64,000 bases of DNA from the NCBI GenBank assembly GCA_002269645.1, contig NIVC01001811.1, positions 513,001 through 577,000 of the forward strand, given 5' to 3'. Origin of the DNA: Macrostomum lignano. Lineage: Eukaryota. The notes under the pieces were generated by a model. It did not search any database. It was not told where the DNA came from and saw nothing but the letters and a program-made list of their open reading frames with translations. The translations under genes and the position numbers were made by a program. The number at the start of each line of letters is the position of its first letter. Position 1 is the first letter of the stretch. Positions 20,401 to 29,400 of the stretch are shown here, piece by piece.

Positions 20401-23400
20401 GGCGAGGCTGAGAAAGCCGCGAGAGGGGGGCAGAGTGCCCGAATCAATATCCAATCAACTGCTGTGAGGGGGAGCAATTGAAGTCTGAGGGCTGGCCTGC
20501 GTGCGTGAGAGAGAGAGAAAGAGAGAGAGAGAGAAAGCGGAGGGGCTGCATCTGGCAGATTAAACTTGCTACCTTGACAATTGGTTTTAATGTAGAGATT
20601 TAGAGAGGCATGAATTGAACAAGATTACTCTTGAACTGGCATTTTATGTTTGTCTGTCTGTCTGTCTGTCTGTCTGTCTGTCTGTCTGTCTGTCTGTCTG
20701 TCTGTCTGTCTGTCTGTCTGTCTGTCTGTCTGTCTGTCTGTCTGTCTGTCTGTCTGTCTGTCTGTCTGTCTGTCTGTCTGTCTGTCTGTCTGTCTGTCTG
20801 TCTGTCTGTGTGTCTGTCTGTCTGTCTGTCTGTCTGTCTGTCTGTCTGTCTGTCTGTGTCTGTCTGTCTGTCTGTCTGTCTGTCTGTCTGTCTGTCTGTC
20901 TGTCTGTCTGTCTGTCTGTCTGTCTGTCTGTCTGTCTGTCTGTCTGTCTGTCTGTCTGTCTGTCTGTCTGTCTGTCTGTCTGTCTGTCTGTGTGTCTGTC
21001 TGTCTGTCTGTCTGTCTGTCTGTCTGTCTGTCTGTCTGTCTGTCTGTCTGTCTGTCTGTCTGTCTGTCTGTCTGTCTGTCTGTCTGTCTGTCTGTCTGTG
21101 TGACAATATCGTAGTGTTATATGTTTGCGTGTCTTAATAAACTGCCTCAGTTCCTTTCAATTTCTCAAGATACCACACGATGAGAAATGTCAGCCTTTCC
21201 CAGCGTAAGCTGTTTCCGGTGTCAAGAGAGCACTATTTTTACAGCATAAAAAATTCTCCCGGCTGCAACCTCCGCAGTTCAAGCAGATGGTGACTAGCGG
21301 CGATCTGCCCTGCACAAAGGACGAAGCAGCAACCCTAGCAGCGGTGCACCTTCACCTGGACGACGCATGGCCAGACAGCCGAGACTTCACGCGCAGCCTG
21401 GGCGGTCCATTGTCATGGCGGATCCGGCGCGGCCAGCAGGAGGGCCGAGCGGAGCTGATTAATATGCGGAAGGAGTTCCTCAGATCCGTGAGTGCGAGAG
21501 GAGGGAAGAGAGAGAGATTAGTCATAGCTATGTACACTCAGAAATTGGCGGAGGGATTGGTGGGTCGGTGGGGGTAGAGATTGGCCATAGCTATGTACAC
21601 TTAGAAATAGGCGGAGGGATTGGTGGGTCGGTGGGGGTAGAGATTGGCCATAGCTATGTACACTTAGAAATAGGCGGAGGGATTGGTGGGTCGGTGGCAG
21701 TAGAGATTGGCCATAGCTATGTACACTTAGAAATAGGCGGAGGGATTGGTGGGTCGGTGGGGGTAGAGATTGGCCATAGCTATGTACACTTAGAAATAGG
21801 CGGAGGGATTGGTGGGTCGGTGGCAGTAGAGATTGGCCATAGCTATGTACACTTAGAAATAGGCGGAGGGATTGGTGGGTCGGTGGGGGTAGAGATTGGC
21901 CATAGCTATGTACACTTAGAAATAGGCGGAGGGATTGGTGGGTCGGTGGGGGTAGGGAGAGACTGGCCTCAGCTATGTACATTTGGCGTTGGCGGAGTCA
22001 GGTGGATGAAACAGATAAGTGGGAATTTTTTCAATTCTCTTAGATGATTCTCTTAGATGAAAGAGATTAAAGCAAATCTGCTTGATGAAAATGGTGCAGA
22101 AATTGCTGATAAAAAGACACGACTAAAGTCTGAGCGGATTCGCTAGCAGATTAGCAAAGTTGATTTGAGCCATGCACTTTCGGCTCTCCTGCTGTCCTGC
22201 AAAAAGCGGAAGGCTGAGAGCCAGGCCGTGGCGTATTCTTCAAACAATTTTGGCACCGTTTCAAGAGTAGCGAAGACCGGGGGGAATTGAAGAAGCCGGA
22301 AAAGAGTGAGAGAGTAGCTTGGGGGTTGATAAAGGTATTAAAAATAACACTAACCAGGTGGGACAGCTGGGAATATCGGGTGGAACTTCCGCTGCCTTAG
22401 GAGGTGGGCAAGCAGACTTGAGTGGCAGGCTGGCTTGAGCAAATGACATGCTAGCCTGCTGCGAGTGTAGAAAAACTTGATCGGATTGGTAAATATGGCT
22501 GAAGAGCGCTTTGCTAGGGGAATAGGATTACTGGGATATCCTGGGATGAATTTATTGACTAAGACGATTTTTTTGGTGGATCAGTTCAATTTGGGATAAT
22601 TAATTAAATTTATTTTCAAATACAAGCCTAAAAAACTCTGGTGCACTTTTATGCATAGAGTTTGCACTGATTGTGGGAGAAAGCTTTGGAGAATTTCAGT
22701 GATGATAGGGTGAATGGAAGAGCGAAGTGAGAGGAGAGTGGAGAGAGATGAGATAGCAGAGGAGAGAGGTGAGAGGAGAGACGAGAGAGGAGAGACAAGA
22801 GAGAAGAGAGAAGAGATAAGAGAGAAGAGATAAGAGATAAGAGAGGAGAGAGGAGAGATAAGAGAGGAGAGAGGAGAGATAAGAGAGGAGAGAGGAGAGA
22901 TAAGAGATAAGAGAGGAGAGATAAGAGAGGAGAGATAAGAGATAAGAGAGGAGAGATAAGAGCGGAGAGAGGAGAGATAAGAGAGGAGAGATAAGAGAGG
23001 AGAGAGGAGAGATAAGAGAGAGATAAGAGAGGAGAGAGGAGAGAGGAGAGATAAGAGAGGAGAGATAAGAGAGGAGAGAGGAGAGATAAGAGAGGAGAGA
23101 GGAGAGAGGAGAGAGGAGAGATAAGAGAGGAGAGAGGAGAGAGGAGAGCGGAGAGAGGAGAGATAAGAGAGGAGAGAGGAGAGAGGAGAGAGGAGAGATA
23201 AGAGAGGAGAGAGGAGAGATAAGAGATAAGAGAGGAGAGATAAGAGAGGAGAGATAAGAGATAAGAGAGGAGAGATAAGAGCGGAGAGAGGAGAGATAAG
23301 AGAGGAGAGATAAGAGAGGAGAGAGGAGAGATAAGAGAGAGATAAGAGAGGAGAGAGGAGAGAGGAGAGATAAGAGAGGAGAGATAAGAGAGGAGAGAGG

Positions 23401-26400: not shown

Positions 26401-29400
26401 AGATGCAAGATGGATGCAAGATATACGGCAGCTGTATGGGATGGCAGATCGATGGCGGATCGATGGCAGATCTTCAGTCAGCCCCGCCCATCCGCTGCAG
26501 CAGTCCAAGTGGTCCCCCGGTCGCGTCTCCATGAGCCGCAGGCGTCTAATGAAGCAGCTGTCATGCGTCAGTGAAAATGTCGAGGACGACAAACAGGTGA
26601 AGGAACTGAAGCTCATCCTGGCTCGGTACCTGCCGCCTGACTATCACAACAGCGCCAAGGTGCATGCCCTAATTCAGGTGAGTTGGCAGCTTTTTATCAA
26701 GTCTGGGAGTTCCCAGATACTTCTGTCTGATGATAACAGTCCTCTCCTCTCCTCTCCTCTCCTATCCTCTCCTCTCCTTTCCTCTCCTCTCCTCTCCTCT
26801 CCTCTCCTCTCCTCTCCTCTCCTCTCCTCTCCTCTCCTCTCCTCTTCTCTCCTCTCCTCTCCTCTCCTCTCCTCTCCTCTCCTCTCCTCTCCTCTCCTAT
26901 CCTCTCCTCTCCTTTCCTCTCCTCACCTCTCCTCTCCTCTCCTCTCCTCTCCTCTCCTTTCCTCTCCTCTCCTCTCCTCTCCTCTCCTCTCCTCTCCTCT
27001 CCTCTCCTCTCCTATCCTCTCCTCTCCTTTCCTCTCCTCTCCTCTCCTCTCCTCTCCTCTCCTCTCCTCTCCTCTCCTCTCCTCTCCTCTCCTCTCCTCT
27101 CCTCTCCTCTCCTCTCCTCTCCTCTCCTCTCCTCTCCTCTCCTCTCCTCTCCTCTCCTCTCCTCTCCTCTCCTTCTCTCCACAGTTTTTTTCACATAAAA
27201 ACCAATCTGGCAGTGGAAAAAGAAAAGGTTCACTCAGTCTTCTTTAAGCAGATTAACGTCAATATCGCACTGGCCGAATCCTCCTGTCCACTCACCCCGC
27301 TCAGGGGTCTTAATCTTCTAGACGGATTATAGTCCAGAAAGTCTCCTGTTTGCATTTGCAGTATTCCTTTGCGTGACCGGTGATTTTTTCTTATAATGCG
27401 ATAAGAGATGAGAGACTAATAACCCTAATCCCCCAGGCTCGAATTGCTTGATCCGAACTATAGGAACAGTTGAGCTGGGGAATATATTGAATTGCAGTGT
27501 GTTTTAGGCAAATATATCTAATACAGGTATCTACTTTAGATATCTTGTACAGGTGTCTTGTACAAGTGTCAAGTACATGTTTCTAGTACAGGTGTCTAGT
27601 ACAGGTATCAAGTACAGGTGTCTAGTACAGGTTTCTAGTACAGATGTCTAGTACAGATGTCTAGTACAGGTATCTGGTACAGGTGTCTAGTACAGGTGTC
27701 TAGTTCATGTTTCTAGTACAAGTGTCTAGTACAGGTATCAAGTACAGGTGTCTAGTACAGATGTCTAGTTCATGTTTCTAGTACAAGTGTCTTGTACAGG
27801 TGTCTAGTACAGTTGTCTAATACAGGTATCTGGTACAGGTGTCTAGTACAGGTATCAAGTACAGGTGTCTAGTACAGGTGTCTAGTACAGATGTCTAGTA
27901 CAGATGTCTAGTACAGGTATCTGGTACAGGTGTCTAGTACAGGTGTTTAGTACAGGTATCTGGTACAGGTGTCTAGTACAGGTGTCTTGTACAGGTATCA
28001 AGTACAGGTGTCTAGTGCAGGTGTCTAGTAAAGGTGTCTAGTACAGGCGTATAGTACAGGTCTTTAGTACAGGTATTTATAGTACAGGTGTCTAGTACAT
28101 TTATTTGTCTAGTTCAGGTATCTAGTTCAGGTATCTAGGTAGTGCCTTCTTGCACTACACGATATATACCTTTACTGTATCTTGTACAGGTACCTAGTAG
28201 TACCTTGAGTACATCATCGATACCATAGCACAGCATTTGATACCGTCATCTAGACACCGCTTATGTACGCTCGTATAAGCAACGCAAATACTCGTATGTA
28301 AATTTTACAACACTTTTTTGTCGCAGGAAAAGCACAACAAGCTGTGGCACACCCCGTTCTACGATAACGAGTTGAAGTTGAAGCAGATGTACGTCAAGTT
28401 GTGCAAAAAGTTGCCCAGCTACGGCTGCAAGATTTATCAGGTAAGATTTCTTTGAAGTTCAGTTGGCTACGGTGCGTCCCTGAAGGTTTTAATGTCCTCA
28501 TAAAGTCACATGAGGTCAACATTCTACCAGGAAAGTCCCTTTGAGGTCGCCATTCTCCCAGTAAAGTCCCTTGAGGTCACCACTCTACTCGTATATACCT
28601 AAACAAGATGAGTGTTAAATCAGGTTCCTACACCTACACAAATTACGCAGGTGAAAGAGATCCAGAGAGGCAACTTACAGCGAAAGCAAGGCCGTCTGTT
28701 GGGCATTTCGGAGGAGAAGATTGTGCTGCTGGACAGCAAGAGCAAGGCCCTAATCCGATCTCAACCTGTTTCCGAGCTGCGACATTGGCACCTGGGAAAT
28801 TCTCCCATTAACTGCGTGGAGCTGGACTTCCAGAGCTGCAAGCCGTGGAATCTGGTCTGCTCAAGCGAGGACGTGCTGCGGTCACTGTCGCTGGCTCTGT
28901 GGGAGGTCCTGGAGTGCGACGGTATCATGGTCCGGCGGAATAGCCTTGAGTTTGGTGAGCAGCAGTTCTTGTTTGATTTTTCTTACCTGTCAGATCATTG
29001 CTTACCTGTAAGATCATTGATTACCTGTAAGATCATTGATTACCTGTCAGATCATTGCTTACCTGTAAGATCATTGCTTACCTGTCAGATCATTGCTTAC
29101 CTGTAAGATCATTGATTACCTGTCAGATCATTGCTTACCTGTAAGATCATTGATTACCTGTCAGATCATTGATTACCTGTCAGATCATTGCTTACCTGTA
29201 AGATCATTGATTACCTGTCAGATCATTGCTTACCTGTAAGATCATTGCTTACCTGTAAGATCATTGATTACCTGTAAAATCATTGATTACCTGTCAGAGC
29301 ATTGCTTACCTGTAAGATCATCGATTACCTGTAAGATCATTGATTACCTGTAAGATCATTGATTACCTGTCAGATCATTGCTTACCTGTAAGATCATCGA

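Follow-up and report, generated by a model that had tools for sequence, protein, structure and literature searches.

Gene content of the locus

The window analysed here is the whole stretch of 64,000 nucleotides at positions 513,001 to 577,000 (forward strand) of contig NIVC01001811.1 from the flatworm Macrostomum lignano (GenBank assembly GCA_002269645.1), and all coordinates below are window positions. It contains one large plus-strand gene of about 40 kb, from ~700 to ~41280, encoding a long-form phospholipase C-epsilon (PLC-epsilon). The order of domains in this gene is ankyrin (ANK) repeats, a helical region, a split REM domain, the F2 and F3 lobes of a FERM domain without F1, a CDC25 domain, and a lipase body in which presumed PH and EF-hand regions precede X-Y-C2-RA1-RA2. 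The F2-F3 module, which lies between the REM and CDC25 halves of the exchange factor for guanine nucleotides (GEF), is the subject of this report. An initial annotation, made from the sequence alone, had proposed a FERM module at this place, and the proposal is borne out by a Pfam FERM_M match above cut-off, a talin-like predicted fold and a CDC25 domain downstream. Our confidence in the identity, the architecture and the ancient origin of the module is high.

The large gene is collinear by tblastn, from 1070 to 41083, with the 3505-residue tick protein XP_075732545.1 (Rhipicephalus microplus), and over shorter spans with a 3526-residue sea star protein and a 3560-residue acanthocephalan protein. 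The public M. lignano models are fragments: P0001 (A0A1I8HPE4, named 'FERM domain-containing protein') is 93-100% identical per exon to the FERM-region exons, P0002 covers part of the same region, and P0012 is the model of a paralog.

Exon structure of the F2-F3 module

The peptides quoted in the initial annotation lie on the plus strand where it had placed them. Its assignment of the FERM module to exons 9-12 holds for all four exons, yet the range is incomplete because F2 begins in an unlisted mini-exon of 72 nt at 19599-19670 (sites ag/.../gtaagc). This mini-exon encodes the linker and the start of F2, aligns by tblastn with paralog model P0012 at 75% identity and, when included, carries the FERM_M match to profile position 10. 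Exon 9 (21278-21487), placed by its splice sites and the paralog alignment, encodes the early F2 helices and the beginning of an insert that is variable and disordered; its F2 motif is also present in tick, Limulus and nematode orthologs. Exon 10 (26501-26677), matched at 100% by P0001 and P0002, encodes the end of the F2 insert and a middle F2 helix; its acceptor at 26501 is the best in-frame candidate, though it stands in a non-conserved stretch. Exon 11 (28327-28440) completes the F2 helices, opens F3 with its first strand and aligns to talin 290-315. Exon 12 (28651-28954) encodes the F3 lobe, which is PTB/PH-like by AlphaFold2 and Foldseek, carries a VKE...RLLGI motif and an invariant Trp, and ends in phase 1. 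Next come exon 13 (29751-30010), which encodes a short linker and then the first part of CDC25, and exons 14-15 (31057-31202 and 31526-32002), assigned to the rest of the CDC25/RasGEF domain by Pfam and tblastn; all of these exons are on the plus strand.

With canonical splice sites, no stop interrupts the spliced frame between the REM exon and CDC25, F2-F3 included, in agreement with the earlier statement that the phases run continuously into exon 13. The 28954/29751 junction reads ...RRNSLEF/D/LHRRNVML, and the identical junction in the UniRef M. lignano model P0002 gives it weak support, that model being a gene prediction in which frame errors appear when it is compared with the window.

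Several local details were noted during the reconstruction. A donor for exon 9 at ~21404 was rejected: the P0012 alignment continues through '...MRKEFLR', and the phases fit with a phase-0 gtgagt donor after 21487. An alternative in-frame acceptor (tttttacag/CAT) would add 33 nt upstream of 21278 (21245-21277); its use would repeat the 'KKF' that ends the mini-exon. The tick ortholog alignment by tblastn begins at 21245, and the paralog model favours 21278. The donor of exon 13 at 30010/30011 is GC (AGAGAG/gcaagc, a GC-AG intron), the sole non-GT donor among the nine rebuilt junctions. Within 28651-28954, model P0002 shifts into other reading frames of exon 12 and the window copy is intact, indicating that in the public assembly copy behind P0002 this exon contains indels or errors. 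Tandem repeats make up most of the introns next to the FERM exons (20647-29682) and give long spurious open reading frames on both strands; they include (TGTC)x113 at 20647-21099, a 63-bp unit x7 at 21513-21955, (GAGAGGA)x221 at 22729-24273, (TCCTC)x87 at 26740-27173 and a 19-bp unit x37 at 28983-29682.

The inserted module is a talin-like F2-F3 pair

Against Pfam the spliced product reaches 37.9 bits with FERM_M, for which the cut-off is 23.8 (E 2.6e-9), and the match takes in positions 10-112 of the 112 in the profile; the orthologs likewise exceed the FERM_M cut-off. The F3-type Pfam models stay below threshold in the window, with IRS at 17-18 bits against 22, and F3 was identified by its structure. 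The AlphaFold2 model of the 268-residue spliced product, with a mean predicted local distance difference test (pLDDT) score of 70.5, shows an F3 lobe of seven strands and a C-terminal helix at pLDDT 84-94, so that the structure prediction proposed as a check on the module comes out in its favour. Weighing against it, F2 is modelled at a pLDDT of only 50-78, which is moderate, and contains the disordered insert.

Both sequence and structure comparison point to talin. A PDB search with a 46-sequence profile returned 24 matches at E <= 2e-4, every one of them talin (best E 1.7e-8), and the next match had an E of 1.1; the alignment spans talin 290-363, from the end of F2 to strand 5 of F3. Foldseek against the PDB placed talin head or talin F2-F3 structures at all of ranks 1-25 (best E 2.8e-10, 23% identity), followed by KRIT1 at ~1e-6 and, further down, kindlins and myosin VII. 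Talin F3 structures solved in isolation by nuclear magnetic resonance superpose on the modelled F3 with TM scores of 0.68-0.76 and root-mean-square deviations of 2.5-3.9 A. The VKE motif, a K/R-rich loop followed by RLLGI, and the strand-5 Trp align with talin and are kept from sponge to flatworm, the strand 1-2 loop in the window being less basic. The module is thus the FERM lobes F2 and F3, talin-like rather than KRIT1-like. KRIT1 as the closest relative was rejected, as the KRIT1_FRMD8_FERM_C model gives 14.2-14.5 bits (E 0.05-0.06) against a cut-off of 29.

The remark in the initial annotation that no F1 lobe is evident proved correct. The last REM helix and the start of F2 are only ~50 residues apart; Pfam finds neither FERM_N nor RA upstream of F2 in the window or in the full-length orthologs, and neither of our two AlphaFold2 models predicts strands before F3.

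The FERM, RasGEF and lipase exons form one gene

We considered whether the FERM exons and the RasGEF/PLC exons could be two neighbouring genes, their continuity being an artefact of gene modelling. Single-gene continuity at the window locus is known from genomic sequence and gene models rather than from RNA, and the public M. lignano models are fragmentary, with frame errors in P0002. Against this, REM lies upstream and its partner CDC25 downstream of the FERM exons, so that two genes would mean two half-GEFs; frame and phases are continuous through canonical splice sites, and P0002 itself joins exon 12 to exon 13. The same fusion recurs elsewhere. In a tick, a stick insect and a leafhopper, the predicted proteins have F3 fused directly to the start of CDC25, and a sponge transcriptome open reading frame as well as RefSeq models in three phyla hold FERM and CDC25 in one protein. 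In two metagenome contigs, L001 and L005, the F3 exon, the CDC25 exons, PH, EF and the X box follow one another on one strand within a few kb, and the F3 exon is a few hundred bases from the CDC25 exons. A division into two genes is therefore highly improbable, and the FERM, RasGEF and lipase exons are read as one gene on the grounds of sequence. The two contigs, which come from soil and water metagenomes and derive from AT-rich, short-intron animals, both carry the F3-CDC25 junction, and L001 extends further, through the Y box to the RA domains.

REM, CDC25 and the lipase body

The REM (RasGEF_N-like) exon, exon 8, is open on the plus strand from 17909 to a donor after 19513 and was assigned by profile and motif conservation. 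Its first half lies at ~18017-18115 (conserved island ~18056-18115) and its second at ~19379-19510, with an island ending in ...KEFLAMF; the halves are split by ~420 low-complexity polyAla/polyGln/Gly residues (18130-19370). In the sponge ortholog they are ~40 residues apart, and the paralog model P0012 is without the low-complexity stretch. Tick, nematode, aphid, locust and sponge sequences all retain the REM motifs. Pfam finds no match in the window REM exon alone, but a six-sequence profile (A6, with the window sequence included and the insert removed) matches the REM domain of SOS2 at E 1.7e-5 and that of SOS1 at 0.02, across both halves, and the contiguous REM of the sponge ortholog matches Pfam RasGEF_N at 29.0 bits (cut-off 28.3, E 1.3e-6). 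The upstream REM of the initial annotation is thus real by ortholog profile, though invisible to Pfam in the window exon alone and weaker than the other domains; we accept it as a probable REM domain by homology transfer, with less certainty than the other domains of the protein.

The CDC25 half is present downstream as had been claimed, with a Pfam RasGEF match of E 6.7e-15 on spliced exons 13-15. It is followed on the plus strand (33323-41278) by the remainder of a PLC-epsilon body, recognised by Pfam, PDB comparison and collinearity: a presumed PH-like region (33323-35559), EF/X/Y (37275-39218), C2 (39343-39889) and RA1-RA2 (40244-41278). The Pfam E-values are 6e-61 for PI-PLC-X, 2.3e-31 for PI-PLC-Y, 3.5e-6 for C2 and 2.2e-11 for RA, and the best PDB match of the X-Y region is rat PLC-epsilon at 4.2e-122, against 2.6e-71 for PLC-gamma2. 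Pfam reports RA as one stretch, and the whole of 40280-41083 aligns with RA1-RA2 in the proteins of the tick and the sea star. Collinearity with the orthologs also extends over the exons at 33323-35559 and 36455-36631; Pfam finds no PH domain in these exons and EF-hand_like reaches 18.8 bits against 21. The sea star, tick and acanthocephalan proteins run collinear with the lipase body as a whole. With all testable defining domains present, the gene is a PLC-epsilon ortholog.

Other features of the window

The 5' coding exon of the PLC-epsilon gene (698-2530, plus strand) contains ankyrin repeats (Pfam Ank_2 E 1.9e-8, Ank E 2.1e-7) and is collinear with the ANK regions of tick protein P0214 and acanthocephalan protein P0100. 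A helical, ARM-like middle region is encoded on the plus strand between 13855 and 14966 by two exons (~13855-14127 and 14754-14966) found by tblastn, with 69-84% identity to the paralog P0012 and further matches to the tick P0214 and to P0100; Pfam assigns no family to this region. Beyond the PLC-epsilon gene, a second gene at 58139-63600 on the plus strand is of the alpha-2-macroglobulin/thioester-protein type (MG2 E 4.7e-13, A2M bait-region E 1.3e-16) and includes a weak LDL-receptor class A module at 61342-61605. On the minus strand, 50226-50648 is an open frame with several hydrophobic stretches that resembles part of a membrane transporter and has no Pfam match at E <= 1e-3.

Distribution and age of the module

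The number of relatives rose from 13 matches in a first homolog search to 77 in a profile search and to 667 proteins at E <= 1e-3 in an exhaustive profile search. The set of 77 includes ticks, a spider sequence named PLC epsilon-1, Limulus, a mite, a crab, crickets, stick insects, Hemiptera and nematodes. Long matches were found in Asterias rubens (3526 residues), Trichinella (3268, named PLC epsilon-1), Rhipicephalus (3505), Pomphorhynchus (3560), Adelges (3632) and Bradybaena (3844), in Saccoglossus, Steinernema, Mesorhabditis, Auanema, Parasteatoda, Schistocerca and Biomphalaria, and in the sponge Oscarella pearsei; full-length orthologs measure ~3100-3800 residues. By Pfam, Asterias XP_033632686.1 and Trichinella britovi KRY51589.1 contain Ank, FERM_M, RasGEF, EF-hand_like, PI-PLC-X, PI-PLC-Y, C2 and RA in this order, and in Saccoglossus XP_077870240 this order holds from FERM_M on. 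Steinernema carpocapsae TMS36069.1, named phosphoinositide phospholipase C, matches the F2-F3 profile. ANK-REM-F2F3 is likewise encoded in the C. elegans relatives Auanema, Mesorhabditis and Diploscapter. The 'HFPEEVA' motif opens CDC25 in the window and in all invertebrate orthologs, and presumably in human PLCE1 as well.

The sponge sequence P0181 (an O. pearsei transcript, EukProt EP00118) encodes PTB/PID, ANK, REM, FERM_M, an IRS-type F3 and RasGEF and then ends. Its CDC25 is more canonical, it has no lipase half, and it is marked as a complete open reading frame. P0181 may be a stand-alone GEF of the kind that fused with a PLC into PLC-epsilon, or may reflect secondary loss of the lipase; a GEF half without a lipase hints that PLC-epsilon arose by GEF-PLC fusion.

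The few relatives in the first homolog search might have been taken to mean a recent insertion in Macrostomum or in flatworms. In the profile searches the module recurs at an unchanged position in nematodes, arachnids, insects, crustaceans, molluscs, an acanthocephalan, a sea star, an acorn worm and a sponge, which leaves a recent insertion a negligible probability. Of the two histories that the initial annotation had posed, lineage-specific gain is refuted by this spread over many phyla, and what stands is an ancestral module that is not described in the mammalian enzyme. The module is at least bilaterian and is probably of animal-wide age; an origin ancestral to animals is likely because the same order occurs in deuterostomes and ecdysozoans, long proteins occur in molluscs and the acanthocephalan, and the GEF half occurs in a sponge. 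The survey behind these statements covers the flatworm, ecdysozoan, mollusc, acanthocephalan, sea star, acorn worm and sponge sequences named above.

For the mammalian enzyme, the best 150 of the profile matches include no protein of ~2300 residues, which we take to be the length of mammalian PLCE1, and a homolog search with the CDC25 profile returned only invertebrate fragments of at most 431 residues. Reviews describe the ~500 residues before the mammalian CDC25 domain as conserved but without homology to other proteins or predicted secondary structure, and mention no FERM, REM or ankyrin repeats for mammalian PLC-epsilon (PMC13022664, PMC12501065). The mammalian N-terminus is most likely a remnant after domain loss. 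Counting against so firm a history, the apparent vertebrate loss draws on those reviews and on the lack of a ~2300-residue protein among the best 150 matches.

According to a 2011 survey of the RasGEF family, which did not note the long architecture, insects and sea urchin had lost PLCE1 (PMC3141262). In contrast to that report, we find PLC-epsilon-type CDC25 domains in many insect orders (P0224-P0248, from Lepidoptera, Coleoptera, Hymenoptera, a mayfly and a cockroach) and the full gene in a sea star. Nematode and flatworm fragments carry the automatic names 'FERM', 'B41' or 'Band 4.1 domain-containing protein' in the databases. Our literature search returned no paper that links PLC-epsilon with a FERM, REM or ankyrin region or that describes the long forms. 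The long form is thus already in RefSeq and UniProt and can be found by routine domain scans, while its architecture is undescribed in the literature found.

Proposed function of the F2-F3 pair

The best overall explanation is an ancient long-form PLC-epsilon with an F2-F3 docking module, a reading that we modestly favour. The docking role taken by itself is more tentative, a possible function proposed by analogy. It is suggested because the basic strand 1-2 loop of talin and the Trp equivalent to W359 are kept in F3. In talin, the loop lysines K316-K324 face acidic lipids and the membrane-proximal integrin helix, and W359 lines the groove that pairs with NPxY tails; L325, R358 and W359 are the classic integrin-binding mutants. 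The F2-F3 pair would dock on a membrane rich in phosphatidylinositol 4,5-bisphosphate (PIP2), on the short peptide motif of a partner, or on both, and docking would set CDC25 beside Rap and the catalytic barrel beside the lipase substrate. Some features speak against this assignment. The position of talin R358 is Gln or His, and the F3 sequence stops aligning with talin beyond W359, so that the peptide groove may differ.

Alternatively, F2-F3 could be an internal structural or regulatory element, either a spacer or an autoinhibitory lid on REM/CDC25, instead of a docking site. The pair sits exactly at the REM-CDC25 junction, the linker from F3 to CDC25 is short and conserved in length and partly in sequence, and F1, which several partner sites in other FERM proteins need, is missing. 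There are analogues for such an element in the RA domain that Epac2 carries between REM and CDC25 and in the talin F3 that is masked by the rod. The conservation of the basic loop and of the groove Trp across phyla goes beyond the needs of a spacer, and the AlphaFold2 model gives no confident inter-domain packing either way: the 711-residue model of REM, F2-F3 and CDC25 has a mean pLDDT of 60, with REM at 33-64, and is too weak to show how the domains pack, which is a further point against our overall explanation. We regard a mainly internal role as somewhat unlikely. Docking and regulatory-lid roles are not mutually exclusive.

A more specific form of docking concerns adhesion. By analogy, we infer that the enzyme may be recruited to adhesion or junction receptors, as the initial annotation had also suggested. 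An ancestral PLC-epsilon acting as a direct effector of adhesion receptors would have an F3 that binds NPxY-type tails, or competes with talin for them, these tails being those of integrin beta or a similar receptor, and a basic surface on F2-F3 that binds PIP2. Receptor engagement would then feed into both local activation of Rap, by way of REM-CDC25, and hydrolysis of PIP2, and the mammalian lineage would later have dropped this input and relied on recruitment by Ras, Rap, Rho and G-beta-gamma. This proposal is speculative, and we consider it unlikely.

A KRIT1-type FERM that binds Rap1 would give the enzyme a third Rap site besides CDC25 and RA2. Ankyrin repeats and FERM do occur in one protein, KRIT1 appears in Foldseek at E 1e-6, and there is a weak match to KRIT1_FRMD8_FERM_C. 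The parallel with KRIT1 drawn in the earlier reading of this DNA stands as far as that combination of domains goes, but not beyond it, since the closest FERM is that of talin and the F1 lobe for a Rap1 site is missing. Talin exceeds KRIT1 by four orders of magnitude, and the KRIT1_FRMD8_FERM_C match is far under its cut-off. In the KRIT1-Rap1 crystal structures the Rap1 site lies on F1 and F2, so the absence of F1 makes a KRIT1-style Rap1 site unlikely; in addition, over 1000 residues, REM among them, lie between the ankyrin repeats upstream and the FERM lobes. Taken together, we consider such a Rap1 site very improbable.

The long form of PLC-epsilon matters for several reasons. PLC-epsilon has been studied almost only in mammals, where the region before CDC25 is an acknowledged puzzle (PMC13022664). 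The ancestral state that emerges from this locus and its orthologs combines ankyrin repeats and a talin-type F2-F3 with a complete REM-CDC25 unit, compared with a mammalian enzyme without a described REM. The module also adds to the domains known to sit between REM and CDC25 in a Rap-type GEF, and it is a case of a 'half-FERM' without F1, the function of which is predicted. It offers testable targeting hypotheses for invertebrates with genetics, such as nematodes related to C. elegans and Macrostomum, which is amenable to transgenesis.

Comparison with known systems

The flatworm protein resembles mammalian PLCE1 in its CDC25, X/Y barrel, C2, RA1 and RA2, and probably in the PH and EF-hand regions, and differs in that it and the invertebrate orthologs have ANK repeats, the helical region, REM and F2-F3 before CDC25. 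With the long invertebrate forms of PLC-epsilon it shares the domain order (Asterias, Trichinella) and collinearity over the whole length (tick), but the Macrostomum copy has a far longer polyQ/polyA insert in REM and introns filled with repeats.

In Epac and the PDZ-GEFs (RAPGEF2-6), which are Rap-directed CDC25 GEFs, REM and CDC25 are likewise separated by an extra domain. What they carry there is a ubiquitin-like RA domain, accompanied by PDZ in PDZ-GEF, whereas the flatworm insert is F2 and F3. KRIT1 (CCM1) likewise combines ankyrin repeats and FERM in one protein of the Rap pathway; in contrast to the flatworm protein, in which F1 is missing and the ANK repeats are distant, it has a full F1-F2-F3 directly after the ankyrin repeats and binds Rap1 via F1/F2. 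The likeness to talin extends from the KxxYxxxxxxLxxYG motif at the end of F2 through the VKE motif, K/R-rich loop and RLLGI at the start of F3 to the W359-equivalent Trp. Unlike talin, the flatworm protein is without F0, F1 and rod, R358 is not kept, the similarity of F3 fades after strand 5, and the F2-F3 pair is embedded in an exchange factor.

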